A stretch of DNA of 64,000 bases, taken from NCBI GenBank assembly GCA_977017575.1, contig CDRNVI010000041.1, positions 409,898 through 473,897 on the forward strand, read 5' to 3'. A program made the position numbers and the translations under genes. The DNA comes from Paramoeba atlantica (taxonomy: Eukaryota; Protista; Discosea). Position 1 is the stretch's first letter, and every line of letters begins with the position of its first letter. Positions 28,628-46,854 of this stretch are shown piece after piece. Below the pieces are notes generated by a model. The model ran no database searches, was not told the DNA's origin, and saw only the letters and a list, made by a program, of their open reading frames with translations.

Positions 28628-31467
28628 ACTACTGCTCGTGCCCGTCGTCCCAGGCGACGACGGGTGGATATTCTTACCCCTGCTTCCTCTCCGTCCCTCC
28701 GCCAGCGCGAAAGACGGCCACACGTGCGTGGCACTACTCCTCCTCCCCGCCCTCTCTCCCCGTTACGTTTGAAGCGCAGAAGTGTCTCCCTCCCGGCCCG
28801 ACCTCTACCTCGGTTCCCTGTTCCCGTTTACGCCGCCGCCCAAACCGCCGCCGTCGTAACCGCCGACGCTCTACAGCCGCCAGGAAAACACCGCAAGCAG
28901 CTGCTCGAGGCCATTCTGAGGATGCCCGCCGACGATCCTCGCGCCACCCAGATGAACGAGGCGCTCCAGCCCATGTGGGCAACGGCCACGTGGGCCACAA
29001 GGGAGCGACTGTGGTTCCGCCTGCGCGAGTATTGCCAGGCGAAGGGAATCACCGCGAATCCTGCAAACGCGGTGCTCTTCCTGGAGACTCTGCCTCTCGC
29101 TACCTCGACGCGCATGGGGTACGCAGGGGCATTGAGGACTCTGTTCGATCTCATGGGAATCGAAGGTACCCCATTGAGTCTCTACGTAAAGGCCCTGCAG
29201 GCGCAGGGGGGGCTAGAACCCACGCGGCAGATGCTACCAATCACGCCACTTCTTCTAAAGAAGCTGAGACGTCATCTCGACGTAAAGGAGAGCATGTGTT
29301 GCCTCCTGTGTTGGAAAGCCGCTGCGAGATGGACCGAGACCGCCGACCTGAGGCGGGAGCAGTTCGTGAGTGTGGCCAGTCACGAGGTAATCATCTATTG
29401 GGGCAGGGGGACCAAGACAACCCGTCTGAATCCTTACCGGCCGTACCTCTACGCGATAGTGACTGGACCGGGGACACCCGAACTGGCTCAGTTTGTGGGA
29501 AGTTTGAGACCAGGCCAGCGCCTGTGTTACACGACGGTCCGGGAGATGGACCACAGGATGAATCAACTTCTCGGTCCGGGGTATGGAACACATTCCATAA
29601 AAAGAGGTGCAATTACTTACCTATTCCACGAGATCTCCCTCGGGAATCTCAGGATGGAGGACGTCCAGAACCTCACGAAACACCTCAACGTCGAATCACT
29701 GTTGCGCTACAACGCAAGCAGTATTACAACGGCAAGGGCTCTCGGGACGCAGAGAGTCTCAGCACGTCTCCCAGTGCTGTAACCTCGGAGCACGTGGCAA
29801 AGTGCTTCGAGGAAGTGCCTTACCTTCGCAGGCACTCCGTTGTTTGTGCACGCCGCTCTTCACGGCTAGCCAAGGCACACGACGCACACCTACCTTTGCA
29901 CGTTAAGAAGTCGATACCTGTTATCCATTTGGATCAGGTTAAGGAGTGGATGAGTATGTCAGCTGCCACTCGTTTTCGCAAGGTAGTGGATGAATTATTA
30001 TGGGTACCTAAAGCCCCGTACCCCGAACCTAGTGTGAAAGGTTCATTGCCTGAGGCGGACGTCCGATTGTTGGAGGACGCAGGCATAATCTCTAAGGTCC
30101 CGGCGCAGGAGTTGAGAAAGCGCCCATCGATGCAGTTCATGATTCCCTTCACGGTTGTGGAGACCGATGATGAGGGCAATCAGCGCAGAAGATTTATTTC
30201 ATGGACAAGGGACGATAACGATAGATTAAAATCATATGAACCAAAGGTCCCATTATATCATCCCTCCAAGTATCTTCATAAGGCGCACGAGCCGATGGCT
30301 GTGAAGCGGGACTTCACATGCGGGTTTTACCAGATTGGTATCCCGAAGAGGGCGCGACCCAAATTCCGCCTTAGAACGACCAGTGGAGACGTGTATGAGA
30401 TGAACGTCCTCCCGATGGGCCATAGGTGTGCACCGGAGGTTATGCACACGGTTACCGCCGCGATTGCTGGCGAGGCGTCGATTTGTTCTCAGCGCTACTC
30501 GTTTCACCGAGGCGCTATCGACGTTTATGTTGACGGAGTTCGGTTTGCAGGAACCGACTCCGAGGCCACCACGTACGCTCAGTTCATTGACGAGCGTTGC
30601 GACAAAGCGAACGGTCTTTTCAAAGATCGGGGTCAGCCCCCTGTAGCACAGTACGTGTTCAATGGGGTGGCGTTCGACCATAACGCGCATACGGTCTGCC
30701 TGGGGCCGCGAGTGATCAGGAAACTGCGAGCCGACTCTTTCTTCAACATTTCCTTTGTTGACCTAGAGGCGGTGGTGGGGCGCCTCATTTATGGCTCCGC
30801 AGTTCTCCGACTCAATATGCCGCGATTTTATTTCGCTTTAAAGGTGGCGCAACGGCGTATCAACTTGTTGAACCGTTGCCCGAAGTTATGTGACCGTCCG
30901 GTCGCACTCCCTGTCGTCACTCGCTCCATGCTAGCAGAGTGGAGAAACGAGTTGCTGGAGAATGTTCCACGGTCTCCACCTCCCCATCCCGATGTTGTTC
31001 CACACAAGCATCGTCTCTACACCGATGCCTCGGTGAAAGGATGGGGAGCGATTATGTATTTAGACAGCGGAGAGGTTTTGATTACGGGTGAGGCGTGGCC
31101 TGAGTCATCCTCACATGAGGTGAATCGTGCGGAAGCTGCAGCAGTCCGCTTAGCCCTCGAGAAGTTTTCCGCGCATTGCCCCCGTGGAACCTGCTTGGAT
31201 GTTTTTGTTGACAACACCTCCTGTCAGGCTGCACTGAACAGGAGGATCTCCAAGTCAGAGGGGGTTTCAATGGAATTGCGCGAAGTCCTGCGACTGACAG
31301 AGGAGAAAGGTATTTGTGTGAAGGCAGCGTATATATCCACGGATGAGAACCCGGCGGATGCTGTCAGTCGCGGGAAGGAGATTGAGATGGAGAAAGTCAA
31401 GAGATATGAAGGTAAGATCGAGAGAGACATTAGTAATGTAGACAGTCATATTCAGAGAAAACCCTAA
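28546..31467 (+). CDS. RT-RNase H (-1 frame relative to gag; ORF-track start 28975)
   Basis: RT/RH motifs as in other family-1 copies; no stop from 28546. Confidence 0.88.
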   Translation, partial: GFSRRGGGRRQPLRRNTGFPLGNAPHPNYCSCPSSQATTGGYSYPCFLSVPPPARKTATRAWHYSSSPPSLPVTFEAQKCLPPGPTSTSVPCSRLRRRPNRRRRNRRRSTAARKTPQAAARGHSEDARRRSSRHPDERGAPAHVGNGHVGHKGATVVPPARVLPGEGNHRESCKRGALPGDSASRYLDAHGVRRGIEDSVRSHGNRRYPIESLRKGPAGAGGARTHAADATNHATSSKEAETSSRRKGEHVLPPVLESRCEMDRDRRPEAGAVRECGQSRGNHLLGQGDQDNPSESLPAVPLRDSDWTGDTRTGSVCGKFETRPAPVLHDGPGDGPQDESTSRSGVWNTFHKKRCNYLPIPRDLPRESQDGGRPEPHETPQRRITVALQRKQYYNGKGSRDAESLSTSPSAVTSEHVAKCFEEVPYLRRHSVVCARRSSRLAKAHDAHLPLHVKKSIPVIHLDQVKEWMSMSAATRFRKVVDELLWVPKAPYPEPSVKGSLPEADVRLLEDAGIISKVPAQELRKRPSMQFMIPFTVVETDDEGNQRRRFISWTRDDNDRLKSYEPKVPLYHPSKYLHKAHEPMAVKRDFTCGFYQIGIPKRARPKFRLRTTSGDVYEMNVLPMGHRCAPEVMHTVTAAIAGEASICSQRYSFHRGAIDVYVDGVRFAGTDSEATTYAQFIDERCDKANGLFKDRGQPPVAQYVFNGVAFDHNAHTVCLGPRVIRKLRADSFFNISFVDLEAVVGRLIYGSAVLRLNMPRFYFALKVAQRRINLLNRCPKLCDRPVALPVVTRSMLAEWRNELLENVPRSPPPHPDVVPHKHRLYTDASVKGWGAIMYLDSGEVLITGEAWPESSSHEVNRAEAAAVRLALEKFSAHCPRGTCLDVFVDNTSCQAALNRRISKSEGVSMELREVLRLTEEKGICVKAAYISTDENPADAVSRGKEIEMEKVKRYEGKIERDISNVDSHIQRKP
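28613..29782 (+). CDS. Tyrosine recombinase
   Basis: ARWTE, GTK, HSIKRG, KH, LLRY. Confidence 0.88.
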   Translation: MPPTPTTARARRPRRRRVDILTPASSPSLRQRERRPHVRGTTPPPRPLSPLRLKRRSVSLPARPLPRFPVPVYAAAQTAAVVTADALQPPGKHRKQLLEAILRMPADDPRATQMNEALQPMWATATWATRERLWFRLREYCQAKGITANPANAVLFLETLPLATSTRMGYAGALRTLFDLMGIEGTPLSLYVKALQAQGGLEPTRQMLPITPLLLKKLRRHLDVKESMCCLLCWKAAARWTETADLRREQFVSVASHEVIIYWGRGTKTTRLNPYRPYLYAIVTGPGTPELAQFVGSLRPGQRLCYTTVREMDHRMNQLLGPGYGTHSIKRGAITYLFHEISLGNLRMEDVQNLTKHLNVESLLRYNASSITTARALGTQRVSARLPVL

Positions 31468-31517: not shown

Positions 31518-32195
31518 ATCTTTAACGATAAAGATACAGTTTCTGTACCTTGTTGAATTATTTCCCCTTTTCTTCCATACACCATCTTCCAGACCATGGG
31601 AGGGCACCCCCCTCAAATACACTCCTTTTTGTCGGCATCCCCCTTCCCCGTCTCGTCCCATCACCCCCCTGCGCCGCATCCCCCCACCTCACCCTCCCTC
31701 CGCAGTGCGCTTGCCCCCCTGTTGTGTTTCTCTCTCGCGTCCCCCACCCCCGTGTCAGCAGCCAAAAGTATACAATACTTGCTCACGGGGTGGGGGCAGA
31801 GTTCCTGGCAGATGGGCCCGTGCTTCGCCTCCTCTCGCCCCTGCGTCAGTCGCCCCGTGTCTCTCTCCGCGCTCTTCTCCCTCGGCGTGACGACGTCTTT
31901 GTGTTTCGTGGCCTCCACGTCTCCCACCCTCGTACGGCAACCAAAAGTATTTATTACTGCTAACGGGGTGGGAGCGGAGGTGCAGGACCATACGGGCCTG
32001 GGTGCATGCGGATCGGTGAGTGGGGTAGGGAGTGAGGGAAGGGAAGTACGAGAGGGCTAAGAGGAGTAGGTGTGGAAAGTATGCGGAGTAAGGGAAAGTG
32101 AAGGGCCGTAAGTGTGGAAATTGTGGAAAAGTTGGACTCCATACATAAAAAGTTAGACCCAATACTATTCCCCCCAATTATTTGCAAAAAAAAAA
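31518..32195 (+). mobile_element. SL-capped, poly(A)-tailed non-coding retroelement (SINE-like, about 670 bp)
   Basis: Full 32-nt SL at 31524-31555; ends CCCCCCAATTATTTGC-poly(A), like the CRE-type 3' ends at about 36800 and 51200. Confidence 0.65.
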
Positions 32196-32199
32196 CGAT

Positions 32200-35100
32200 A
32201 AAAGAAATCAACAAGGTACAGAAACTGTATCTTTAACGATAAAGATACAGTTTCTGTACCTTGTTGATTTCTTTTCCCTTTATATCATCCTTACGCCCTA
32301 TGGTGACAACCCGGTCCAAAGCTAAGCAGGGTACCGACTTCCAGCACGAAGCTAGCGCGCACAAGCTTGGCTCTTGGGATCAATTTGAAGCCAATAAAGA
32401 TCTAGTCGAAGGGGTGAGTACATTCGAGGAGAGTCTTTATACCACGCCACTTCCACCTGATCCCTCATCTGAATTATTGGAGCGCGCTGACAAGATTGCC
32501 TGCGACATTAAGAACTCCACAGAAGGCGAAACGCCAGACACAGGACACCAGAATGCTACCACCGAAGAAGAACTGTTCTCCAGTGCCCGCCCGACGGAAA
32601 GCCTCGAGTTCCAATTCGAAGGAGCCAATTCCTCTTCACTCAGCCAATTAAAGTCCTCTAGAAAGGCTGTGAAGGAGAAGTACGAGCGCCATAACCGCAG
32701 GGTAGGCTGTGCCGAATATGACTATGCTGATAACAGGCTAGTTTTTCCCGATCTCACGCCTCCTGATCTTCGCTTCTCAGTAAAGGGTAGCAGTAAAGGC
32801 CGTAAAAAGAAGAAACGCCCGAAGGGCATCAATCTTTCTCAGCTGGGTGCAGTGTCCGGGGCCGACAGCGAGGAACGCGACAATATAGAGTCCAGCGCGA
32901 ATTCACCCGGGCCACGCACTCATGCCACCGGAGTCATGGACAGCCCGTCTATCAAATTGTCCCAAAAGGAACAGAACACTAACACCCCCACGGGTAAGCG
33001 TAAACGTCACGTGCAGGTGTCGAAACCAGGGCCACGCGATTCCTCAGATACCGAAAGGCTCAATCAACCCCCCAATACCACTCCAGAAAAGCCACCTACA
33101 GTCAATGGAAACACGCGGAAATGTCCTTCTCAGGGATGTGCATGGCAAACTGTGCCTCACGGGGGCCAATGGCAATCCTTTTATAACCACGTATCCCACA
33201 GACACGGGGACGAGGTGCCTGATACCTGGTGGAACGAGGAGGGACGTTTCCGATGCAGGGATTGCAACAGGCACTACAACCTAAGCAAACAGGTCACCCA
33301 TGCCGAAAACTGCGCTTTCCGCTGCTCTTCTCCCCCACCTATCTCCGAACCTACACAGACAGGGGGCGACCCGAGGGACAACCCTGCATTTTTTGCCGCA
33401 CAAGCCGTCGCCGAACCCCTTCCCTCCCTGGCGTCAATCTGTTCGACACCTCTCAACACATGCAAAGACATTCCCAACAGCTGTCGCCAGGGGTGGGCGA
33501 AAGTCTTCTGTGATTGTCTCTCTTCCGCTGTACGAGACAATACAGTTGAGGCCTGGACTCTTCTCGCCATGCTACCGAAATGCGTACTACCGGCACCTCA
33601 TCGTGGGGGGAGCAGGGCAAAACTATCGTACGCCTCGCACGTTCGGAAGTGTCTCGCCCGGTGGTCACGGAAAGAATTTCTCCCCCTTTGGAACGAAACA
33701 ATTGCGAGCCTACAACACAAAAAACGCGTCGCACAAGCACAGAGTCCGGAGGACGAGATATCCAAATCTGCTATGCGAGCTGAAAGACTCGTTCGCGACT
33801 CGGAACTATCTCGAGCCATGGCTGCCCTAACCTCTGAACCAGTAGCCCCGGATGACGATGATACTTACACTAAACTCCAAGCTAAGCATCCATCCCGACT
33901 CGCTACGTCGGTGAAACCCCTCAGTTCATCGACGGAAATGGGACCAAAACCACTTCGAGCCACAGAGGAAGACGTAACGCAGGCTCTTGCAACTTTTCAC
34001 CGGGGGTCATCGGGTGGCGCTTTTGGGCTACGCCCTGAACACGTACAAGTGGCACTAGAGTACCACCATGACGGCCGTACGGATCCATTGGGTACACTGA
34101 CCGACTTTACGAACCACATGCTCGCGGGGCAAGTGCCGCTCGAAGTTCAGTGCTATTTCGCTGGAGGCCGCTTATGCGCGTTAAAGAAAGGGGAGCGCGA
34201 CGTGCGGCCAATAGCGGCCGGAGAGACGCTCCGTCGCCTGGTGAGCAAAGTCGCCTGTCTCTCCGCCAAAACAACAGCTCGTAAGCTCTTCAAAGGACAC
34301 CAATACGGTGTGGCCACTCCAGCAGGGTCTGAGCGCGTCATCCATCGATGCAGACAGACATTCGATTCTCACGTTGACGACAATGACTTCATTCTATGCA
34401 AAATTGACCTGAAAAACGCATTTAACCATGTCTCACGGGACTGGATCATTGCCCTTACTCGCGAACACTTTCCCGCTCTCAGTCACTACGTAGATTGGTG
34501 TTACTCTTCGGACAGCCTACTTACTTTCGGAACACGCACCATTCCGTCTTCTGAAGGAGTGCAACAAGGCGACCCCTTAGGTCCTCTCCTTTTTTCCCTG
34601 GTCCTGAGAGAAGTAGCGGCGGAAATTCACGCGGTAGCCCCAATGCTCGATTTGAATCTGTGGTATCTGGACGACGGGGTGCTGGCTGGATCATCTGCTG
34701 ATGTGCGGCACGCATTCGACGTGCTGGAAACCAAAGGACCACAACGGGGACTCCATATCAACGCCGCTAAATGTGAACTCGCCTTACACCCCTCATCATC
34801 CCCTCGCGCCTCCGTTTTCCCTGACATCCCTGGCCCGAATAAAAATTTAGAGGGTAATTTCAACATTTTAGGTAGCCCAGTCGAATCCACTGAATACTGT
34901 CATAAATTCCATTTGGACAATGCCTTCGAACTGGCCCAAGATTCCCTAACCGCTATAACTTTGCTCGAGGATCCCCAGATCGCTCTCTCCCTCATCCGGC
35001 ATTGTACAGGCTTCTGCAAGATGGTCTACTCTCTCCGTACCACCCCGACATCTGCACTGCAAGATATATGTCGACGCCTGGACGACACTGTTCAGTCCAC

Positions 35101-36870
35101 TGTCGAAAACTTTTTCCACCCACTTGGCGATGACGCCCGGAGACAGACACAACGAGACAAGCGCTTCGGAGGGCTAGGGCTCCGTTCAGCAGAGGAACAT
35201 TCCTCTTCTGCTTACGTGGCCTCCGTGGCATTCGCATCAAGGAAGGATGGCTGGGCCCCCACCGAAGCAAAAGGTTTCGAAGAAGCAGTGAGCGATGTCA
35301 ACAATCGCGCTGGACTGAATCTGGTAGACGGCGAAAATGGCACAATACCCAAGAGCATGGTTGTGTCAGATCGTTCCCTCTTTAGTACTATCGAAGCGAG
35401 CGAATCTAGAAATGAAGCGGTAGTTCCCAGACAACGGGATCTCAGTCACTCGATCTCTTCCCAGGAATACAACAACGCGCTTAATACCGCTGACCCGCGG
35501 ACGAGGGCCCGATGGATCTCTGAAACGGGGGAAGGAGCGTCGGAGTGGGCATTTGTTTTGCCTTCCAAGAAGAACGGTCACGCATATACCCCGACAGAGT
35601 TCCGGATGCTGGTACGCTGGTGGCTTGGGGAGAACATATACCCCGGCACCCGACCTTGCCCCATGGACAAATGCACGCAGCCGCTTGGTCCAGAGGGGGA
35701 TCACGCGATGTCGTGCAAAAGCGGGCATGGTATCATTTCCCGACACAATGCTCTGGCAACACAGTTTGCGGCGGAGTGTTCCAAGGCCGGGCTCGCCCCC
35801 AAACGAGAGGTCAGCCTGGGAAACAAGGGTCCGGGGGGCACCCTCACTAGGCCTGCAGATGTCTTTATAGACAGCCACCTCGGTCGGTCCCTTGTACTCG
35901 ACTTCGCTGTCACCCATGTCCAGCAACAAAAGTATACGGACACAGTCCGTGACGCTAACTGGGTGACGGCGGGGTCGTTCGCGGAACAATATGCCACCGT
36001 GAACAAGAGCATGCAACGCGCAGAGGCGACTGCAGCACACTTTAAGTTCGGAGCCATGGTCGTAGAATCCTACGGCTCGTGGTGTCCCAGCGCAATGTCT
36101 GTTCTCCGAGAGGTCGCAGTAGCTAGGGCGGCTAAATCGGGCAGTGACGTATCGAAGGGGGCGGCCTTACATCAGATTCTCACAGCTCTGAATGTAACAC
36201 TGATGAGGTCGCAGGCCCGAATGCTAGTCTTGCGATTACCCGCAACGGGCCCCGACCTGGCTCTCCTGGGGTACGGGAAGGAAGAGTAGCAAAGCGGCCA
36301 AGAGGTGGAAAACCTCGTGGGCAAGGGTGGGGCGGTAAGTGTCGTGGTTGCTTTGTTTGGTTCCTGGTTCTGCAGGGGGGTTGTGGCCAGCGTCGGACGG
36401 TCCTGCGGGCAATAAGGTCCGGGGTAGTGAGAGAGGTGGCAGGTTGAGGTTTGCTCGTTTCGGGTTTGCTTGGTTTGGGTTTGCTCGGTTTGGTTGGGCT
36501 TTACATACATTTGCTAGTTTTGGGCTCACCAAAAAAAAAAAAGAAAAAGACATTTTATGTATAAAATGGTTTTCTATAGACGCAAATTAAGAAAATTTCA
36601 TGTTGGAGTTTCTTGAACACACAACATTCTATAAATTGAATCAAAAAAAAAAAAACAAAACTGAGATAAAATTGCTAATTTGATTGCTTGTTTTCAACTC
36701 GTTTCCCCCCCCCCCCCCAATGGACCTACTTGGTTCGTCTACTGGGTCAAAATATAGAGGCAATGCCGCGACTCATACTTCTCCCCCCTCATTAATTGCA
36801 AAAAAAAAAAAGAAGAAAGAAAGGAAAAAAAACAAAGACAAAAAAACAAAGACAAAAACACAAAAAAAAT
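32200..36870 (+). mobile_element. Full-length CRE-clade non-LTR retrotransposon A (SL-capped, LsmAD-ZnF-RT-RLE)
   Basis: SL at 32235-32266, intact ORF, 3' UTR and poly(A). Confidence 0.9.
32300..36289 (+). CDS. Polyprotein: LsmAD-like domain, C2H2/C2HC zinc fingers, RT, CCHC motif, restriction-like endonuclease
   Basis: WDQFEAN...STFEESLYTT; CPSQGC..HVSHRH; QQGDPLGPLLF, WYLDDG; CPMDKC..DHAMSC, RHN, RPADV, LDFAVTH. Confidence 0.9.
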   Translation: MVTTRSKAKQGTDFQHEASAHKLGSWDQFEANKDLVEGVSTFEESLYTTPLPPDPSSELLERADKIACDIKNSTEGETPDTGHQNATTEEELFSSARPTESLEFQFEGANSSSLSQLKSSRKAVKEKYERHNRRVGCAEYDYADNRLVFPDLTPPDLRFSVKGSSKGRKKKKRPKGINLSQLGAVSGADSEERDNIESSANSPGPRTHATGVMDSPSIKLSQKEQNTNTPTGKRKRHVQVSKPGPRDSSDTERLNQPPNTTPEKPPTVNGNTRKCPSQGCAWQTVPHGGQWQSFYNHVSHRHGDEVPDTWWNEEGRFRCRDCNRHYNLSKQVTHAENCAFRCSSPPPISEPTQTGGDPRDNPAFFAAQAVAEPLPSLASICSTPLNTCKDIPNSCRQGWAKVFCDCLSSAVRDNTVEAWTLLAMLPKCVLPAPHRGGSRAKLSYASHVRKCLARWSRKEFLPLWNETIASLQHKKRVAQAQSPEDEISKSAMRAERLVRDSELSRAMAALTSEPVAPDDDDTYTKLQAKHPSRLATSVKPLSSSTEMGPKPLRATEEDVTQALATFHRGSSGGAFGLRPEHVQVALEYHHDGRTDPLGTLTDFTNHMLAGQVPLEVQCYFAGGRLCALKKGERDVRPIAAGETLRRLVSKVACLSAKTTARKLFKGHQYGVATPAGSERVIHRCRQTFDSHVDDNDFILCKIDLKNAFNHVSRDWIIALTREHFPALSHYVDWCYSSDSLLTFGTRTIPSSEGVQQGDPLGPLLFSLVLREVAAEIHAVAPMLDLNLWYLDDGVLAGSSADVRHAFDVLETKGPQRGLHINAAKCELALHPSSSPRASVFPDIPGPNKNLEGNFNILGSPVESTEYCHKFHLDNAFELAQDSLTAITLLEDPQIALSLIRHCTGFCKMVYSLRTTPTSALQDICRRLDDTVQSTVENFFHPLGDDARRQTQRDKRFGGLGLRSAEEHSSSAYVASVAFASRKDGWAPTEAKGFEEAVSDVNNRAGLNLVDGENGTIPKSMVVSDRSLFSTIEASESRNEAVVPRQRDLSHSISSQEYNNALNTADPRTRARWISETGEGASEWAFVLPSKKNGHAYTPTEFRMLVRWWLGENIYPGTRPCPMDKCTQPLGPEGDHAMSCKSGHGIISRHNALATQFAAECSKAGLAPKREVSLGNKGPGGTLTRPADVFIDSHLGRSLVLDFAVTHVQQQKYTDTVRDANWVTAGSFAEQYATVNKSMQRAEATAAHFKFGAMVVESYGSWCPSAMSVLREVAVARAAKSGSDVSKGAALHQILTALNVTLMRSQARMLVLRLPATGPDLALLGYGKEE

Positions 36871-36873
36871 AAA

Positions 36874-39800
36874 ATCTTTAACGATAAAGATACAGTTTCT
36901 GTACCTTGTTGAATTATTTTCTTTTCTTTATCTCACTCTTACGCCCCATGGTTGTTTTAACTCGACCTAAGGCGAAGCAGGTCTCGAACTTCGAGCGCGA
37001 GGTGAAAGCACACACACTCGGCTGCTGGGACCAATTCGACGCAAACAAGGACCTTGTTGAAGGCAAGAGTACGTACCATGTAGACTTATACACTACGCCC
37101 CTCCCACCTAATCCTTCAGCTGAATCTTTACGGCGAGCGGACGAGATTGCACTCAGCATTACGAACTCTGTGGAAGGTGAGACACCAGATACAGGGCAAC
37201 AGCAGACAAGCACGGAAGAGGAACTTTTCTCCAGTGTCCGTCCAACTGAGGACTTCGAATTCCAGTTTGCGGGAGCAGAATCTTCTTCACTCAGCCTATC
37301 AAAAACCACAAATAAGGCTGTGAAGGAGAGGTGCGAACGACATATCCGGAGGTCATACGACAACGAATATAATTACGAAAAAGATGAATTGCTCTTCCCC
37401 GATCTAACTCCTGAAGACCTTACTGTGTCTGTGAATGGATGCGGAAAAGGACGGAAAAAGAAGAAGCGACCCAAGAGCATCTCCCTTTCCCAATTGTGTG
37501 CTGAGTCCGGGGCCGACAGCGACGACCGTGACACCGCACAATCAAGTTCCAACTCCCCTAGGCCATACACTCCTGAGGCTGAAAGTGACAGCAATCTGTC
37601 TGCGGCATCATCTCCGAAAAAAACGGACACAAAACCCCATGCGGACACTTCAGTAAGTCTCAAGCGACACCGACGCCCATTAACCTCCAGAAACGCCGAG
37701 TCATCTAAAAGCACGCCCGCCCCCATTATTAGCACACCAAGTCGGCCCAGGAAATGCCCCTTGGATTCATGTACCTGGGAAACAGGGCCGCACGGCGACC
37801 AATGGTAAGCCTTTTACAACCACGTGGCTAACAGACATGGGGAAGAAGTGGCGGAATCATGGTGGACAGAGGAGGGAAGATTCCTATGCCCGGGTTGCAA
37901 AAAGCACTACTCCATGCGCAAGCAAGCAACACACAAGATGCACTGCAGGTTTCGCACGCCGTCACCCAAACCTTCGCATGGTTCCTCCGCTGGCTCCAAA
38001 GATTACCCCGTCCCGCCCCCAAATTCCGTTACTGAGCACCACCCTGAGCAGCAGCTTAGCGAGAACACTATGCAAGGCGCCCCAACAGTGGAAGATCTGC
38101 CGTCCCTATCATCAGTATGCGCCTTGTCCGTCAATACCTGCAAAAATATCCCAAACAGCTGTAAGCCTGAATGGGCGAAAACACTTACCGAATGCATGGC
38201 GGCGGCCGTACGTGACAACACCATCGAGGCTTGGACCCTGCTGGCTATGTTACCTAAATGTGTAATTCCAGCACCACGACGCGGCGGGGACAAGGGTAAA
38301 GCCTCATACGCCTCCCACGTCCGCAAATGCCTTTCCAGATGGAAGAACAAGGAATTTCTACCACTTTGGAACGAGGCGTTGTCAAGCCTGAAGCGTAAGC
38401 GGAAAAGTTCTCCACAGGCTCAGAGCATTGAAGAGGAGGATCAGAAAGCTGCTCTCCGAGCAGTACGCCTCGTGCGAGATGGTGAACTTTCCCGCGCAAT
38501 GACTGCGTTGACATCCGAACCACTTGCCCCAAACGATGACACGACTTATCAAAAGCTCCAGGCGAAACACCCGTATCGACTTCTGGGTCCAAGTCCGATT
38601 ACCACGCCTTCTTTGGATATTAAACCGATCACCGCAACCGAAGAGGACATCATTACGGCGCTTTCCAGCTTTCACCGAGGTTCCTCAGGGGGAGCTCTCG
38701 GACTTCGGCCTGAGCACCTACAAGTAGCAGTGCAATTCCATCACGACGCCAGGACAGATCCGCTCGGTACGCTCACGAAACTTATTAGTCATATGCTAGC
38801 GGGCAAAGTACCACTTGAAGTCCAACACTGCCTCGCCGGCGGACGCTTATGTGCTTTACACAAGGGTCAGGGTGATGTCCGCCCCATTGCCGCAGGGGAA
38901 ACCTTCCGCCGACTAGCGAGCAAGATAGGATGTCTGTCTGCAAAGGCTAAATCCAGAACGCTCTTCAAAGATCAACAATATGGAGTGGCGACGCCCGCAG
39001 GAGCCGAACGTGTTATCCACATTTGCAGGCGCCTGGTTGCGCACCACATCAATAACGAGGATTTTGTGCTATGCAAGGTTGACCTTCGCAACGCTTTCAA
39101 TCACATTTCAAGAAATAGCTTTATGGCCTTGACACGGCATCATTTCCCTGAGTTGAGCCCGTTCGTGGAATGGTGCTACAGTTCGGCCAGTAACCTGACA
39201 TTCGGCGCACGTGTAGTTCAATCCTCTGAAGGCGTACAACAAGGAGACCCGCTCGGACCCCTTTTGTTCTCGCTCGTCATGAGAGAAATGGCCGCAGAAA
39301 TTAAGACCGGAGCTCCTGATCTTCATCTCAATCTCTGGTACCTTGATGATGGCGTCCTTGCAGGCCAGGCTTCTGATGTACGTCACGCACTAGATATCAT
39401 CGAAATTGGAGGGCCAAAGTGGGGTCTGAACCTCAATCCGTCCAAGTGCGAAATAATCACACACCCTTCCTCATCTCATCAAACTACCCACTTTCCTGAC
39501 ATTCCCGGGCTCAACATCAACATGGAGGGTAATCTGAGCATCTTGGGAAGCCCCATCGGATCTACGACGTACAGCCGTCAGTTCCTCCTCGACAGCGCGA
39601 TTTCCCAGGCGGAGGAATCCCTTGAAGCGATCGAGAAACTGGAGGACCCTCAGGTCGCTTTCTCTCTCATCCGACAGTGCACAGGGTTTTGCCAGATGGT
39701 TTACTCCCTTCGCACGACGCCGACGGACGAACTACTGGACTTATGTCGCAGACTCGACAACGCCGTTCAGCGTACGGTTGAAACGTTTTGTCGCCCACTG

Positions 39801-41389
39801 AGTGACATGGCTCGACGACAAGCACAAAGAAATAAACAGTTCGGCGGTCTCGGCCTTCGCTCAGCGGAAATGCACGCCACCTCAGCGTACGTAGCTTCAG
39901 TAGCTTTCGCTTCCGACAAGGATCGATGGGATGCAAATGAGGCTGAGGGCTTTTCTTACGCCGTGGAGGACATTAACCGGCGTGTAGGGGGGTGTATGGT
40001 GGACAAATCTACCGGGAAAATCCACAAGGACTCCGTCATAAAGAGATGCCCCTTCTCGCCCTCCCCCGATATTGACCTTTCTCAAGATTTGGCGATTCCT
40101 CGACAACGCGATCTCAGTCATGCGATTTCAGCGAGAGACTTTGAGGAAGATTACGCAAGAGCGGATCCCCGCACTCGGGCTAGGTGGCTCTCACAAACGG
40201 GCGACGGGGCATCCAACTGGGCCTTCACGGTTCCCTCGACTCTCTGCGGTCATGCCTACACCCCTACTGAATTTCGGACTCTGATTCGTTGGTGGCTCGG
40301 GGAGAGTATATACCCTCAAGGTCACAACTGCCCGATTCCGAATTGTCGCCTCCCACTCGGCCCTGGGGGGGACCATGCGCTAGCCTGCAAGTGCGGCCAC
40401 GGAATCATTACAAGGCACAACGCCCTAGCGGAACAGTTCTCCGCTGAATGCAGCAAGGCCGGGTTGAGCCCACAGAGAGAAGTCTCTCTGGGAAACAGGG
40501 GTCCGGGCGGCGCCCTCACGCGACCCGCAGATGTCTATGTCCGGAACGGTGGTCTCGGTCAGGCCCTCGTCCTTGATTTCGCTGTCACACATGTTCAGCA
40601 ACAAAAGTATACGGACCTGGTCCGTGATGCTAACATGGTGGCAGCCGGGTCATTCGCCGAGAGGTACGCCGTCGAACACAAGCGGAAGCAACGGGAGGAA
40701 GCTGAAGAAGCGAAGATCAAGTTCACAGCTATGGCTGTCGAAACATACGGATGCTGGAGTCCGGCCGCTATGTCGGTCTTGCGGGAAGTCTCGAAAGGCC
40801 AAGCTGCGACCTCAGGTGGAACACTTTCGCAAGGGGGGGCGTTACAGCAAATACTAACAAGTCTGAACGTCACCCTCATGCGCTCCCAGGCGCGTATGCT
40901 CGTTCTTCGCCTCCCCTCGGCGAACACAGGCCCTGTACTTGTGGGGTATGGCAAAGAAGAGTAAGGAAAACTTCTGGCCTGGATGTTGGTCGAGTCGACA
41001 GAGTCTATGCTCACGCCTAGCCCGCGAGGGCTAGGTACCCCAAGTGAGGTAGTACACGGGAAGTGAATCTCCTCCCCGTCGGCCAGCATCCTGTTTCGCG
41101 ACCGTGTCGCTGTCGACACAGGCCCGCGCCTGCGCCCTCCCATATAGCAAGGGAAGGGTTCACAAGTCAGGCCGTGGAGAGGTCGAAAGACCCGGTCCGG
41201 AACGCGCGAATGGATTGGGCGTGGATTGCTTGTTTTAGTTTTTACTGTTTCTTGTTTGTAGTATATACTTAGGGGAGATTAAATTGCTAGTTTTGGGCTG
41301 AGAAAAAACAAAAGGTACATCTGTGGAAACAAAAAGATTTGCTAATTTGATTGCTTGTTTTCAACTCGTAAAAAAAAAAAAAAAAAAAA
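36874..41389 (+). mobile_element. Full-length CRE-clade element B (SL-capped)
   Basis: SL at 36880-36911; same domain order as A; poly(A) at 41370-41389. Confidence 0.9.
36948..40964 (+). pseudogene. LsmAD-ZnF-RT-RLE polyprotein with one in-frame TAA (37806-37808)
   Basis: ORFs 36906-37808 and 37824-40964 share a frame; QW*AFYNH aligns with QWQSFYNH (A) and KWQAFYHH (C). Confidence 0.85.
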
Positions 41390-44300
41390 AACGATAAAGA
41401 TACAGTTTCTGTACCTTGTTGAATTAATTTTTCTTTCTCTTTATTGCTTACTAGGGTCGCACCATGCCGCCCGATGATTCCTTTGATGCCAACGCGTTAC
41501 CAATGGATGATGACTCTTTTCGCCAGGAACAAATGTCACACAAACCCGGAGATTGGGACCAATTCGCAGGAAACGCTCACCTGATTTCCGGCCAAAGCAC
41601 CTACAATGAACTTTTGTATACGACACCTATCCCCGAAAACGTACCTAAACACTGGACCGAAAGAGCCTACAAGATCGCGGCAGAGGAACCTACACCGGAC
41701 ACAGGCAGAATGACCGCGGACGAAGAGACAAATCACTCCCTTGTCGTGGCAAACAACGTGGGAATTACTTCGGAGGCCTCATCCGCCCACATTTTCTCTC
41801 CAACTAAGGCTACAAAGCGCAAGAATACTGATTCTGCCCCTACCACATACCACAACGCCAATACGCAGCAGAAGGATGTAGAACGTCAATGCCCAGCAGA
41901 AGGATGTACGTGGAAAACCCCACCACATAGCGGAAAATGGCAGGCATTTTATCACCATGTAGCTCATCGACACGGCAAAAACATTCCAAACGAGTGGTGG
42001 GAGGGAGAGGGAAGATTCCTCTGCAGAGATTGTGGCAGACACTACGCCAAGAACAAGCTCAAGTCTCACCCCAAAAACTGCAGGGGCCGCAACAATTCCG
42101 GACGGTCATTAGCCCCACCAACGGCACGTCCCCAAAACGCAGAAGAAAATCCAACAGACAATTTGCCATCACTCGGCTCCATCTGCGCACTTCCCATGAG
42201 TACCTGCAAAGACGTTCCACACTGTTGCAGATTCCTCTGGGCGAGCATCCTCACGCAATCCTTGACATCCGCAGTGAAGGAAAACACGGTAGAGGCATGG
42301 ACACTTCTCGCAATGCTCCCTAAGTGTGTCCTACCAGCACCTTTCCGAGGCGGTCGCAAAGGCCACACATCATACTCTACGTACGTCGAAAACCGCATGA
42401 AACTGTGGCTAGCGGGGGAGTACCTCTTGCTATGGGAAGATGCCCAGAGGGATCATTATAAAAAGCGCTCCAGATCACGCGACTCCGAAATCGATGCAGA
42501 CAGAGCGGCAATTCGAGCCGAACTCTTGGCCCGCCAGGGGGAATTTTCCAGGGGAATGGCAGCCCTAACCGCAGCCCCCATGGCGCCAGACAATGCAGAT
42601 ACCCTCGAAAAGCTCTTGGAGAAGCATCCAGACCCACACGAAAATCCCTTGCAGAATGATCTACCACCGATCGAGGGCAACCCCCTACACCTAGAGGAAA
42701 CAGAGGTCAAAAAAGCGATCGTCAGCTTCCGCAGGGGATCTTCAGCCGGCACGATGGGCCTTCGTCCAGAGCACCTCCAGGCAGCCATCTTGGAACATGT
42801 GGACAAGGATGTGAATCCTCTCTCGGCCCTCACGCGACTAGTGAACCACATGCTTCAAGGAAAAGCGCCACAAGACGTCCAATCATTCTACGCTGGAGCC
42901 CGGCTCTGCGCCCTGGAAAAAGGCGAGGACGATGTTCGACCAATCGCAGCGGGTGAAACCCTTAGACGCCTCGTAAGCAAGGCGGCATGTATCTCGATAA
43001 AGGAGAAAGCGGGTACTCTGTTCAACGGGCGACAATATGGTGTAGCAGCCCCCGCGGGAGCCGAACGAGTTATCCACCTCTGCCGGAGAGCCATGCTCAA
43101 TAACCTGGGGAGTGACAATTTTGTCTTCTGCAAAGTGGACTTAAGAAACGCTTTCAATAACGTCAGCAGGCCTGTTCTCACCCTAACCACGCGCTTAAAT
43201 TTCCCCGAACTCTCACCTTGGGTAGAGTGGTGTTACTCCAACGTGAGCTGTCTTACCTACAGAGACAATGTCATACCCTCGGCAGAGGGGGTACAACAAG
43301 GAGACCCACTAGGCCCTCTTCTCTTCTCTCTAGTACTATCCAGTGTAACAGAAGAAATATCGTCTCGGTCGAATCTAGACACTCAACTTTGGTACCTAGA
43401 TGACGGGGTACTCATAGGGGAGGCTGAGGAGGTCAGGAAGGCGCTCGATGTTTTTTCCAATGTTGGCTCCCGATGCGGACTTTTCCTAAACCCATCGAAA
43501 TGTGAGATAATAACACCGCCTGCTTCATCCCATCTCACAGGATTATTTCCAGAGATACCGAAGACTAAAACTCGTACTGATGGAAATTTCGACATCTTGG
43601 GCTCCCCGATTGGGTCAGCGGAGCATTGCGTGGAGTTTCTCAGGTCAGAAGCCATTGAGCCCGCACGCGAAACATTAGACGCAATAGGTTTCATAGGAGA
43701 CCCACAAGTAGCCATGTCCCTCATCCGGCAGTGCACTGGATTCTGTCAAATGGTCTACGCACTTCGCACGACACCCCCTCAGGCGCTTTCTGAGCTTTGT
43801 AATTCCCTTGATGAAAATGTTCTAAAAGCCGCGGAATGGGCACTTTTCCCTCTGGATTCCCACGCGCGTGACCAAATCCAACGTAAGAAGCGCAACGGGG
43901 GTTTTGGTCTCAGGTCTTCGCTCCTCCACGCAACAGCAGCATATGTCTCCTCCGTTGCGCACGCCGCCGATGCAGACGATTGGGACCCTTCAGAAGCCGA
44001 GGGATTCACCATTTCCGTGCAGGACGTGAATAGAAAGGCGGGGGTAGAACTTGTGGATCCCGGTACAGGACGCATCCCGAAACAGAATAAACCACATCCA
44101 GAGTCCAGCCAAAGACACAACCTCACCTCGAGAAGCAAACGCCCACGACACATACTCAACAACATGGACGCGGATAAGACGGCCGAGCCGGAAATGGTTA
44201 TACCCCGGCAGCAGCAACTGAGCCAAGCCATATCGCAGCAGGAATTCACTACAGCCTACGGCCAGGCCGACCCCCGCACCCGAGCACGATGGGTTTCACA

Positions 44301-45529
44301 GTCAGGAAAGGGAGCTGGGAGCTGGGCCTTCGTCACGCCCTCAAGGAGTAAAGGTTTTGCTTTCACACCAACCGAGTTCCGCACGTTATCGCGCTGGTGG
44401 TTTGGCATGGACATTTATGGCCAAGACCGCCCCTGCACAGCAAACGGGTGTTCCCTACCCCTACAGAAAAATGGGGAGCATGCATTATTGTGCAAGAACG
44501 GACATGGCCTCATCACGCGGCACAATGCGCTTTGTGTAGAATTCGCCTCCTTTTGCAGCAAGGCCAACATGGCTCCCCAGCGAGAAAAAAGTCTAGGAAA
44601 TCGGGGGCCAGGAGGGGGTCTCACCAGACCGGCTGACGTTTTCCTCCCCACGTACACTCTAGGGAAAGGCATGGTACTAGACTTCGCAGTCACCCACGCA
44701 CAGCAAACAAAGTATTTGGACTCTGTCCGGAATGCTAGCTGGGTGGCTGCAGGGTCTTTCGCCGAGCATTACTCAGAAACGAAGGAAAAACAACGTCAAG
44801 AAGCAGAAGAAGCACAACTAGGGTTCACGGCCATGGTTGTCGAGTCTTTTGGCTCGTGGAGTAAAAGAGCAATGGCGGTCTTATGGAAGGTGGGAGCACT
44901 GCGCGCCAACTCGTCAAAAGGTCTTCTCACGGATGCCCAAGCCCGAAATGACCTTCTGAAAGAGCTTAACGTCACACTCATGCGCTCTCAGGCCCGCATG
45001 ATGGTCTCCCGGATAGTCGTCAGTGACCCCCAAGCTCCCCTGGAAGGGGAGTAGGGCCCACAGGCATGGTCCTCTAGGGTAACAAGACGATTAGGGTGCT
45101 GGTCGCGTCGACAGAGTCTATACTCACGCCTAGCTCGCGAGGGCTAGGTACCCCAAGTGAGGTATTACACGGGCAGTAAATCTCCTCCACGTCGGCCAGC
45201 ATCCTGTTTCGCGACCGTGTCGCTGTCGACACAGGCCCGCGCCTGCGCCCTCCCATATAACAAAGGAAGGGTTCACAAGTCAGGCCGTGGAGTGGTCGAA
45301 AGACCCGGTCCGGAACGCGCGAATGGATTGGGTCTGGATTGCTCGTTTTTATTTTTACTGTGCCTTGTTTGTCGTATATACTTAGGGGAGATTGAATTGC
45401 TAGTTTTGGGCTGAGAAAAAAAAAGAAAAAGAAAATATACTTCTGTGGAAATAAAAAGAATTGCCAATTTGATTGCTTGTTTTAAATTCATATACCCCCC
45501 TAATGGACCAAACAAAAAAAAAAAAAAAA
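41390..45529 (+). mobile_element. Full-length CRE-clade element C (SL-capped)
   Basis: SL at 41390-41421; intact ORF; shared 3' UTR; A-tail at about 45514-45529. Confidence 0.9.
41464..45054 (+). CDS. LsmAD-ZnF-RT-RLE polyprotein
   Basis: WDQFAGN...STYNELLYTT; QQGDPLGPLLF, WYLDDG, RHN, RPADV, LDFAVTH. Confidence 0.9.
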   Translation: MPPDDSFDANALPMDDDSFRQEQMSHKPGDWDQFAGNAHLISGQSTYNELLYTTPIPENVPKHWTERAYKIAAEEPTPDTGRMTADEETNHSLVVANNVGITSEASSAHIFSPTKATKRKNTDSAPTTYHNANTQQKDVERQCPAEGCTWKTPPHSGKWQAFYHHVAHRHGKNIPNEWWEGEGRFLCRDCGRHYAKNKLKSHPKNCRGRNNSGRSLAPPTARPQNAEENPTDNLPSLGSICALPMSTCKDVPHCCRFLWASILTQSLTSAVKENTVEAWTLLAMLPKCVLPAPFRGGRKGHTSYSTYVENRMKLWLAGEYLLLWEDAQRDHYKKRSRSRDSEIDADRAAIRAELLARQGEFSRGMAALTAAPMAPDNADTLEKLLEKHPDPHENPLQNDLPPIEGNPLHLEETEVKKAIVSFRRGSSAGTMGLRPEHLQAAILEHVDKDVNPLSALTRLVNHMLQGKAPQDVQSFYAGARLCALEKGEDDVRPIAAGETLRRLVSKAACISIKEKAGTLFNGRQYGVAAPAGAERVIHLCRRAMLNNLGSDNFVFCKVDLRNAFNNVSRPVLTLTTRLNFPELSPWVEWCYSNVSCLTYRDNVIPSAEGVQQGDPLGPLLFSLVLSSVTEEISSRSNLDTQLWYLDDGVLIGEAEEVRKALDVFSNVGSRCGLFLNPSKCEIITPPASSHLTGLFPEIPKTKTRTDGNFDILGSPIGSAEHCVEFLRSEAIEPARETLDAIGFIGDPQVAMSLIRQCTGFCQMVYALRTTPPQALSELCNSLDENVLKAAEWALFPLDSHARDQIQRKKRNGGFGLRSSLLHATAAYVSSVAHAADADDWDPSEAEGFTISVQDVNRKAGVELVDPGTGRIPKQNKPHPESSQRHNLTSRSKRPRHILNNMDADKTAEPEMVIPRQQQLSQAISQQEFTTAYGQADPRTRARWVSQSGKGAGSWAFVTPSRSKGFAFTPTEFRTLSRWWFGMDIYGQDRPCTANGCSLPLQKNGEHALLCKNGHGLITRHNALCVEFASFCSKANMAPQREKSLGNRGPGGGLTRPADVFLPTYTLGKGMVLDFAVTHAQQTKYLDSVRNASWVAAGSFAEHYSETKEKQRQEAEEAQLGFTAMVVESFGSWSKRAMAVLWKVGALRANSSKGLLTDAQARNDLLKELNVTLMRSQARMMVSRIVVSDPQAPLEGE

Positions 45530-45828
45530 CTTAATACAAAAAGTGGTCTTAATACAAAAAGTGGTCTTAATACAAAAAGTGGTCTTAATACAAAAAGTGG
45601 TCTTAATACAAAAAGTGGTCTTAATACAAAAAGTGGTCTTAATACAAAAAGTGGTCTTAATACAAAAAGTGGTCTTAATACAAAAAGTGGTCTTAATACA
45701 AAAAGTGGTCTTAATACAAAAAGTGGTCTTAATACAAAATGTGGTCTTAATACAAAAAGTGGTCTTAATACAAAAAGTGGTCTTAATACAAAAAGTGGTC
45801 TTAATACAAAAAGTGGTCTTAATGGTCT
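45530..45828. repeat. 18-bp tandem array (GGTCTTAATACAAAAAGT)n
   Basis: Directly visible, about 16 copies. Confidence 0.95.
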
Positions 45829-45978
45829 TACAAAATATTTTTTTTTTTTTTTTTTTGTAAAGGAACGACGTGTGCAGTACGGTGGTGTTTTTTTTTTTTT
45901 AGGAGATTTTTTTTTTCTTTTTAACCTTATAACTGCAACTTGCAGCCTTAACTTATTTCCAATTTACTCGGCTTCCCC

Positions 45979-46623
45979 TGTTGACATCACCGACGTTTCC
46001 TCCGTGCCTCTCGCCAACGATATCCGCAGTCCGAGCGGACACCCAAAACCGAGCAGAAGAGGATTTTCAAGGCTCAAGATTCCAGGCACCCAATTCGGTC
46101 CGCGAAGAAGTGTTGACATCGCCGCCGTTTCCTCCGCGCCTCTCGCCAACGATATCCGCAGTCCGAGCGGACACCCAAAACCGAGCAGAAGAGGATTTTC
46201 AAGGCTCAAGATTCCAGGCACCCAATTCGGTCCGCGAAGAAGTGTTGATATCGCCGCCGTTTCCTCCGCGCCTCTCGCCAACGATATCCGCAGTCCGAGC
46301 GGACACCCAAAACCGAGCAGAAGAGGATTTTCAAGGCTCAAGATTCCAGGCACCCAATTCGGTCCGCGAAGAAGTGTTGACATCGCCGCCGTTTCCTCCG
46401 TGCCTCTCGCCAACGATATCCGCAGTCCGAGCGGACACCCAAAACCGAGCAGAAGAGGATTTTCAAGGCTCAAGATTCCAGGCACCCAATTCGGTCCGCG
46501 AAGAAGTGTTGACATCGCCGCCGTTTCCTCCGCGCCTCTCGCCAACGATATCCGCAGTCCGAGCGGACACCCAAAACCGAGCAGAAGAGGATTTTCAAGG
46601 CTCAAGATTCCAGGCACCCAATT
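45979..46623. repeat. 129-bp tandem array, 5 copies
   Basis: 645 bp = 5 x 129; 43-aa periodic ORFs. Confidence 0.95.
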
Positions 46624-46742
46624 AAGTAAAGGTCTTAATAAAAGTAAAGGTCTTAATAAAAGTAAAGGTCTTAATAAAAGTAAAGGTCTTAATAAAAGTA
46701 AAGGTCTTAATAAAAGTAAAGGTCTTAATAAAAGTAAAGGTC
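46624..46742. repeat. 18-bp tandem array (GGTCTTAATAAAAGTAAA)n
   Basis: Directly visible, about 6.5 copies. Confidence 0.95.
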
Positions 46743-46744
46743 TA

Positions 46745-46830
46745 ACAAACAAATATAAGCAAATACCTATGACTAATATAATCACACTTCCAAATCGTCC
46801 CAAAATCAAAGAACACATAATACGATATTC
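46745..46830 (-). mobile_element. Fragment of a family-1-like YR B repeat
   Basis: Minus strand GGGACGATTT..GTGTGATTATATTAGTCATAG..TATATTTGTTTGTT matches about 1982-2052. Confidence 0.7.
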
Positions 46831-46854
46831 CGTGCGAGAAAGAGCCGCGCTTCT

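Follow-up and report, generated by a model that had tools for sequence, protein, structure and literature searches.

The stretch of DNA analysed here, called the window throughout, comprises 64,000 nucleotides of the forward strand of contig CDRNVI010000041.1 (positions 409,898 to 473,897) in a Paramoeba atlantica assembly (GCA_977017575.1). Between 32.2 and 45.5 kb of the window lie three retrotransposons of the non-LTR kind (without long terminal repeats), here named A, B and C, arranged head to tail and all on the + strand. Their proteins share one order of parts, namely an N-terminal module resembling the LsmAD domain of the poly(A) messenger ribonucleoprotein (mRNP) protein ataxin-2/PBP1, a variable linker, two zinc fingers, a reverse transcriptase (RT) and a C-terminal restriction-like endonuclease (RLE). 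The modules sit where the original prediction, made from the sequence alone, had placed them, in three long + strand open reading frames (ORFs): the core runs from GSWDQF at 32369 to SSARP at 32593 in A and from GCWDQF at 37020 to SSVRP at 37244 in B, and begins with GDWDQF at 41548 in C, where the module ends at about 41748-41760. The distance between the start of this core and the start of the ORF is 24-29 codons in all three elements.

Element A begins with a + strand copy of the spliced-leader (SL) exon (32235..32267, an exact 33-nt match to the SL), with an A-run upstream (32186-32195), and has a single intact ORF of 1329 amino acids from the first ATG (32300..36289, +). Its LsmAD module covers residues ~14-103 (32339..32608, +), as delimited by the Pfam match, the subfamily alignment and hhalign, and is followed by the linker (32609..33121, +), which holds a basic GRKKKKRPK stretch (32798-32824). 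A motif search places C2H2-like and CCHC-like zinc fingers at 33122..33313 (+). The RT domain (34184..34786, +; RVT_1, 65.8 bits) has its YLDDG motif at 34664-34678, and the RLE region (35657..35917, +), collinear with that of relatives, carries CCHC, RHN, RPAD and LDF motifs. The 3' untranslated region (UTR) (36290..36549, +) includes an A-run at 36531-36542 and an A-rich tail that reaches to about 36549.

Element B starts with its own SL exon copy (36880..36912, +), preceded by a long A-rich tract, and its ORF (36948..40964, +) is interrupted by one in-frame stop at 37806-37808 and is otherwise collinear with A; a copy of the same subfamily elsewhere in the genome (L042) is open over 1358 amino acids. 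The module of B lies at 36990..37259 (+), as placed by the Pfam match and the subfamily alignment. The SL exon copy of element C (41390..41422, +) stands directly 3' of the A-run that ends B (41370-41391). C belongs to a diverged subfamily, with 51% amino acid identity to A, a shorter linker, an intact ORF of 1196 amino acids (41464..45054, +) and a 3' UTR (45055..45529, +) that ends at an A-run (45514-45529). Its module (41518..41760, +) aligns over the full length with those of other subfamilies; the N-terminal half is well preserved, and the C-terminal half is diverged and shortened. RVT_1 was matched in all three ORFs at 64-66 bits, and in a sequence search of the PDB the only matches were R2 retrotransposon proteins, over the RT (E 3e-6). 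The basic stretch recurs in the linker of B (37449-37475) and is conserved in about 9 of 14 subfamilies; it is a candidate nuclear localisation signal.

To establish what the module is, we compared it with the Pfam LsmAD family (PF06741, curated cut-off 25 bits). The modules of A and B exceed the cut-off (31.7 and 26.2 bits), as does that of the database relative P0001 (30.8 bits), and that of C falls below it (17.2 bits). A profile built from 15 element modules and searched exhaustively against 1.84 billion representatives found 1162 proteins at E≤0.001; past fragments of the elements themselves, these are mostly proteins in which the match lies about 130-250 residues in. All nine of the non-element matches that were scanned carry Pfam LsmAD, and in three (P0069, P0078 and P0082) it is preceded by the ataxin-2 Sm domain, P0069 having a PAM2 motif as well. 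When the element profile was aligned by hhalign with a profile of 32 cellular LsmAD domains, the two matched with 99.9% probability (E 1.8e-32) over 84 of 88 columns.

The likeness extends to single residues. All subfamilies, or all except one, retain each of the family-invariant W, Q, F, N and Y and the first T of YTT, and the signature WDQF..N, ST(Y/F).E.LYTT, the A..IA helix and EE...S.V is invariant or nearly so across 15 element subfamilies and 32 cellular domains. The second half of the element modules has, in addition, invariant T, P, D and G residues (TPD.G) specific to the elements, reading TPDTG in 14 of the 15. AlphaFold2 models of an element module and of the host PBP1 LsmAD, both of low confidence (pLDDT 67 and 68), share a helix pattern, with short helices at WDQF..N and E.LY, a long confident one at 44-59 and a short one at EE..FS, and no solved LsmAD on which to superpose them came out of the PDB, where a search with the LsmAD profile returned no matching chain (best E 0.6). 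Neither a Pfam match to the SM-ATX Lsm domain in A, B or C nor a conserved PAM2 motif across 14 subfamilies, searched by regular expression, was found. On these comparisons the module is a true LsmAD homologue and not an ataxin-2 orthologue: it resembles ataxin-2, Pbp1 and kinetoplastid PBP1 in full-length LsmAD homology, in the invariant residues and in most near-invariant positions, but the elements lack SM-ATX, PAM2 and the long disordered tail of ataxin-2/Pbp1 and have their own TPD.G motif.

The module is widespread in the genome. At least 102 LsmAD matches, at least 85 of them above the Pfam cut-off, occur in the 45.7-Mb assembly, so the module is not a chance resemblance. Two of these matches are the host PBP1, two are exons of an intron-bearing gene on a contig of 33% GC that belongs to a second organism in the assembly, and the others lie in element frames of up to 1484 amino acids, with the module in frame in continuous ORFs of 1190-1480 amino acids. 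The RT-RLE half of A has at least 62 matches in the genome with 64-100% identity (61 of 1766 first-look candidates scored), and since several subfamilies contain identical copies, activity has been recent.

Fourteen subfamily representatives share 48-82% amino acid identity overall, and this identity is unevenly distributed. Mean identity is 63% in the N-terminal half of LsmAD, 55% in the whole domain, 59% in the zinc fingers, 65% in the RT and 68% in the endonuclease, and drops to 26%, with many indels, in the linker. Ratios of nonsynonymous to synonymous substitution (dN/dS, or omega) were estimated by the NG86 method from six independent closer pairs, most subfamily pairs being saturated at synonymous sites and so left out. 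Omega for LsmAD is 0.14, 0.05 and 0.07 in the pairs with estimable dS, compared with 0.16-0.33 for the linker, 0.05-0.12 for the RT and 0.05-0.10 for the zinc fingers; the pooled pN/pS is 0.21 for LsmAD (Fisher p 3e-71), 0.22 for the zinc fingers, 0.49 for the linker and 0.15 for RT and endonuclease. The module is therefore under purifying selection in propagating lineages, equal in strength to that acting on zinc fingers, RT and endonuclease, and the original prediction that it is kept under selection holds when dN/dS is examined across copies.

We next consider how the elements came by the module. In a tree of the RT-RLE region, all rows that bear LsmAD fall in one clade (SH-aLRT 100) whose sister clade is without it, and parsimony on this tree requires one gain and one loss, the loss being in a rearranged gene call. 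The module was gained once, at the base of a clade that now includes at least 14 subfamilies and more than 100 copies, in agreement with the idea of a captured domain. In the corresponding tree of LsmAD domains, which has only about 100 columns and no named kinetoplastid PBP1 sequences among its rows, the element modules are monophyletic (SH-aLRT 92) and adjoin the host PBP1 and the environmental proteins P0066 and P0076, apart from the other 109 LsmADs (support 91).

The host PBP1 lies apart from the elements as an intact gene in another part of the assembly, with matches to SM-ATX (31.5 bits) and LsmAD (49 bits) and a PAM2-like FLNPNARAFTP motif; a word-index homologue search with it returned no matches at a database-wide E-value. 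It has in common with the elements SH..GSWDQF just upstream of the Pfam domain and the unusual variants HLV.G.STY and YTT.IP.N, and the N-terminal half of subfamily L049 reads almost like host PBP1. PBP1 of Bodo saltans has the canonical KFGV form instead (PMC12898128 supplement). The donor was a euglenozoan LsmAD gene, and the capture took LsmAD alone, with neither SM-ATX nor PAM2. The host PBP1 is the neighbour of the elements in the maximum-likelihood tree, but the approximately unbiased (AU) test does not single out that donor: it also permits, as closest kin, a diplonemid family with the layout PDZ-LsmADx2-RRM (p 0.65), which includes Diplonema papillatum DIPPA_14428 and in which the domain's second half resembles the elements' TPDTG..EE..HS.V. 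Because a search of the window's genome found that family absent, the simplest donor is the PBP1 of the host lineage, the one cellular LsmAD gene that the assembly's kinetoplastid portion yielded.

Several observations on these cellular genes were made in passing. Contigs C44 and C66 each have a near-identical copy of the host PBP1, of its leucine-rich-repeat neighbour and of a PABP gene (L031/L032 and L059/L060), probably as haplotigs or through a large segmental duplication. One contig of 31-36% GC contains an intron-split LsmAD gene of the canonical type (L033, G000:C163:164000-173999), and its GC content and introns indicate that a second, AT-rich and intron-bearing organism is present in the assembly beside the kinetoplastid. 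Two LsmAD copies and no ataxin-2 Sm domain are found in P0055 (Diplonema papillatum DIPPA_14428), P0064, P0065, P0070 and P0075, and some of these diplonemid proteins have PDZ and/or RRM matches around the Pfam cut-offs. They represent a second use of LsmAD outside ataxin-2 and conflict with the claim that LsmAD sequences are almost universally ataxin-2 orthologues. P0071 joins a protein kinase domain to three repeats of LsmAD, and in P0069, an ataxin-2, there are three stretches of SM-ATX and two of LsmAD, the LsmAD copies being identical; both layouts may be assembly or gene-call artefacts.

The ends of the elements bear on how they are copied. Exact 33-nt matches to a kinetoplastid-type SL exon begin at 32235, 36880 and 41390, which are the 5' ends of A, B and C, and a fourth, at 31524, heads an unrelated short insert. 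The 33 bases are common to all four heads and the same five preceding bases to three of them. In A, B and C the SL copy is followed by a 5' UTR of ~30-40 nt and then the ATG, and A-runs flank each element on both sides, in keeping with the predicted setting in A-rich tracts; the SL of C abuts the A-tail of B. The genomic copies thus look like trans-spliced, polyadenylated mRNAs that were copied into DNA and integrated at A-runs, and since each starts with the SL exon and ends in an A-run, the template RNA was like an ordinary trans-spliced and polyadenylated mRNA. A sequencing run guessed to be of RNA has contigs with the SL at their 5' end followed by unrelated sequence, which fits a genuine leader. 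The head of A together with the adjoining inverted SL copy upstream (~32203-32235, by reading of the sequence) makes up a near-perfect palindrome (32203-32267), a snap-back-like 5' end.

With an RT followed by a CCHC motif and an RHN/PD..D endonuclease, N-terminal zinc fingers, a single ORF and an A-tail, the elements are RLE-type long interspersed elements (LINEs) of the R2/CRE/NeSL group, and constitute a single-ORF non-LTR family in a kinetoplastid genome. The label "CRE-clade" first given to them is not established. CRE1, CRE2, SLACS and CZAR likewise have a kinetoplastid host, N-terminal zinc fingers, an RT, a C-terminal RLE, a poly(A) tail and an association with the SL (PMC12278014), but CRE elements occupy one fixed site in SL RNA genes, whereas here the SL exon is the element's own 5' end and lies between A-runs; no insertion at a fixed position inside an SL RNA gene was seen, the SL exon leading into the element's 5' UTR and ATG with no SL intron. 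CRE descriptions also lack LsmAD, a comparison made by description and not by a tree with reference CRE sequences. A second parallel is the kinetoplastid genome of Perkinsela (Tanifuji et al. 2017, PMC5601477), which is reported to have hundreds of SL fragments, 24 of them beside retrotransposon-like sequences, and a single SL RNA gene that is intact; the coding regions there are called ingi-like, and the words LsmAD and ataxin-2 do not occur in the text or supplements (PMC5601477).

To determine how far the module extends beyond this genome, we examined database relatives of the elements. Among those with at least 44% identity, the module is present wherever the gene call extends to the N-terminus; these ENA records come from the same organism or a sister one, and L034, the locus that was read, has the identical SL. 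Those with 42% identity or less are without it. None of the relatives bore a family name, and P0044 alone had a name of any kind ('hypothetical protein'). Among those without the module, P0018 and P0019 belong to the sister clade and come from JGI metagenome 3300050212 (L035:529-5661 and L036:1308-4991), on GC-rich contigs with no SL match and no LsmAD. Both are 40% identical to A and keep its order of parts from the zinc fingers onwards; P0019 does so from the first zinc finger, where it starts, through to its end. Both proteins have an MLLE domain C-terminal to the endonuclease (46.8 and 49.3 bits; cut-off 27), and this is conserved between the two copies, which are 75% identical to each other. 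MLLE is the domain of the poly(A)-binding protein PABP that binds PAM2 peptides, such as those of ataxin-2/PBP1, and in the window's own genome it is found in two PABP genes only. Another relative has a PrimPol match (27.9 bits), the distant relative P0037 has a weak Ulp1 match (20.1 bits, just below the 20.7 cut-off), and an Atlas cluster pairs RVT_1 with Peptidase_C48. These LsmAD, MLLE, PrimPol and Ulp1 additions mark the zinc finger-RT-RLE core as a platform that acquires host domains, LsmAD and MLLE being independent pickups from the same poly(A)-mRNP hub. NeSL/Utopia and other RLE LINEs have the same body plan with a captured host domain added, for example the Ulp1 protease; here the captured domain is LsmAD, or MLLE in P0018 and P0019.

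What is the module kept for? LsmAD on its own is flexible and shows no RNA binding (PMC11898529), which makes a protein-docking peptide the probable role of the module, and in flies the structured domains of ataxin-2 act via protein partners (PMC7946432). PBP1 of T. brucei is a hub that recruits MKT1 or MKT1L, LSM12, XAC1 and PABP2; tethering of PBP1, LSM12, MKT1 or PABP raises expression of a reporter, and XAC1 ranked with the strongest activators when tethering was screened genome-wide (bioRxiv 10.1101/2020.03.02.973057). We propose that the elements keep LsmAD, probably, for attachment to the cell's poly(A)-tail machinery. Since it emerges from the ribosome ahead of the rest of the protein, it could tie the nascent chain, on its own mRNA, to the partner or partners of the PBP1 LsmAD. 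Docking in the PBP1/PABP poly(A) mRNP of that mRNA would give cis-preference, would perhaps stabilise the mRNA and boost its translation, as tethered members of the PBP1 complex do in trypanosomes, and would place the RT beside the poly(A) tail, which would prime reverse transcription at A/T-rich targets. As the template is SL-capped and polyadenylated and insertion is at A-runs, the poly(A) end would matter for priming, and the PABP MLLE of the sister elements may point to the same hub. The model for such a mechanism is human LINE-1, which likewise has a poly(A) tail and needs the poly(A)/PABP end of its mRNA for RNP formation and cis-preference; LINE-1, in contrast, uses the host PABP and encodes no domain of the PABP network, whereas here the link would be in the element protein. 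On balance, and with moderate confidence, we favour this explanation as a whole: a once-captured LsmAD, kept by selection on LINEs, that docks on the PBP1/PABP poly(A) mRNP.

Several points weigh against it. The degraded C-terminal half of the module in the subfamily of element C means that the N-terminal half alone may matter. No PAM2 motif and no MKT1-binding HNPY motif is conserved in the elements (14 subfamilies, regular expressions), and LSM12 was not found in the genome with PF09793 or PF21166, searches in which the controls were silent too. When the element LsmAD and the Lsm domain of the host PBP1 were predicted as a complex, the score was 0.00, which counts neither way. Of this stretch, the putative RNA run covered the SL part alone, and the role of LsmAD in ataxin-2 itself is poorly defined (PMC11898529, PMC7946432, PMC12898128).

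Other uses of the module were weighed against these same observations. If the orphan LsmAD were a decoy, it would titrate a host factor, for instance one for granules, decay or translational repression such as a DDX6/DHH1-type helicase, off PBP1 and so shield the element's RNA or protein. Its family-invariant surface residues are kept and all other parts of PBP1 are absent, as expected of a competitor, and the Lsm/LsmAD region of ataxin-2 is reported to bind DDX6 (PMC12898128); a competitor would not, however, need to be fused in cis to the very N-terminus of the RT protein, LINE proteins are usually too scarce to titrate well, and the MLLE of the sister elements is easier to read as recruitment, so that we consider titration unlikely. 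We think it just as unlikely that the module is a localisation signal, directing the ORF protein or its RNP, with no involvement of the poly(A) tail, to RNA granules or to perinuclear or ER-associated sites. Stress granules do contain ataxin-2 and PBP1, and the LsmAD of human ataxin-2 has putative trafficking signals, a deletion within it dispersing the Golgi (PMC12898128), but granule assembly in flies needs the disordered regions of ataxin-2 and not LsmAD (PMC7946432).

A role as RNA-binding helper, in which the module and another fold of the ORF protein would together bind U-rich or A-rich RNA, is more doubtful still: in ataxin-2, LsmAD helps the adjacent Lsm domain to fold and to bind RNA (PMC11898529), but no Lsm/SM-ATX domain was detected in A, B or C for it to assist. 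That the module has no function, being a neutral hitch-hiker or an artefact of PBP1 genes hit by insertions or of gene-call chimeras, is scarcely credible, since, even though the module of C is under the Pfam cut-off and some database gene calls are truncated or chimeric (P0002), more than 100 copies hold it in frame in continuous ORFs, residues are kept where synonymous sites are saturated (omega 0.05-0.14), the host PBP1 is separate and intact elsewhere, and the reading as a neutral relic is contradicted by copy number, open frames, regional conservation and dN/dS alike.

More tentatively, and with less confidence than in the docking itself, we suggest that LINEs of euglenozoans and other microbial eukaryotes have repeatedly built in pieces of the PABP-ataxin-2 hub, which would hard-wire cis-preference and poly(A)-primed reverse transcription. 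On that reading the orphan LsmAD would be a self-sufficient docking peptide for a conserved LsmAD partner, and the elements a natural dissection of the domain. The LsmAD and MLLE cases together suggest that LINEs which depend on poly(A) can themselves code for a link to the poly(A) mRNP, which bears on the origin of cis-preference.

A 2026 survey of the ataxin-2 family describes LsmAD as its unique hallmark and practically all LsmAD sequences as ataxin-2 orthologues, and lists many chimeras; the term reverse transcriptase has no occurrence in its text or supplements (PMC12898128). Our full-text literature search, whose scope did not include Repbase or Dfam, found neither an LsmAD-RT fusion nor a report of MLLE in a non-LTR retrotransposon, in line with the earlier remark that LsmAD is not known from CRE, SLACS or CZAR. 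Domain capture by LINEs is already known; what is notable here is LsmAD as the captured domain, its strong conservation and the parallel capture of MLLE. LsmAD stands alone on these mobile elements, without Lsm or PAM2, and has been selected through a long radiation, which indicates that it can work as an autonomous module. The element LsmAD may also serve as a compact bait for the partner of a protein linked to SCA2 (spinocerebellar ataxia type 2) and to ALS (amyotrophic lateral sclerosis).

The surroundings of the three elements hold further repeats. Upstream, a long ORF at 28975-31467 has RT and RNase H-like motifs and is presumably the end of a tyrosine-recombinase (VIPER-type) retroelement; beyond it come an A-rich tract and, at 31524, the SL copy. 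That copy is the + strand head of an insert of ~700 bp (31524-32235) with an inverted SL at its far end, C-rich and then G-rich and without LINE coding capacity. Between A and B, a short sequence between A-runs (36722-36811; translation MDLLGSSTGSKYRGNAA..) is met again where the open frame of copy L040 begins, and likewise in the database protein P0002; it may be either a 3' tail that recurs or a small retroposed unit. Immediately 3' of element C, at 45530-46870, lie long tandem repeats, first of an 18-bp unit and then of a ~150-bp unit present five to six times.

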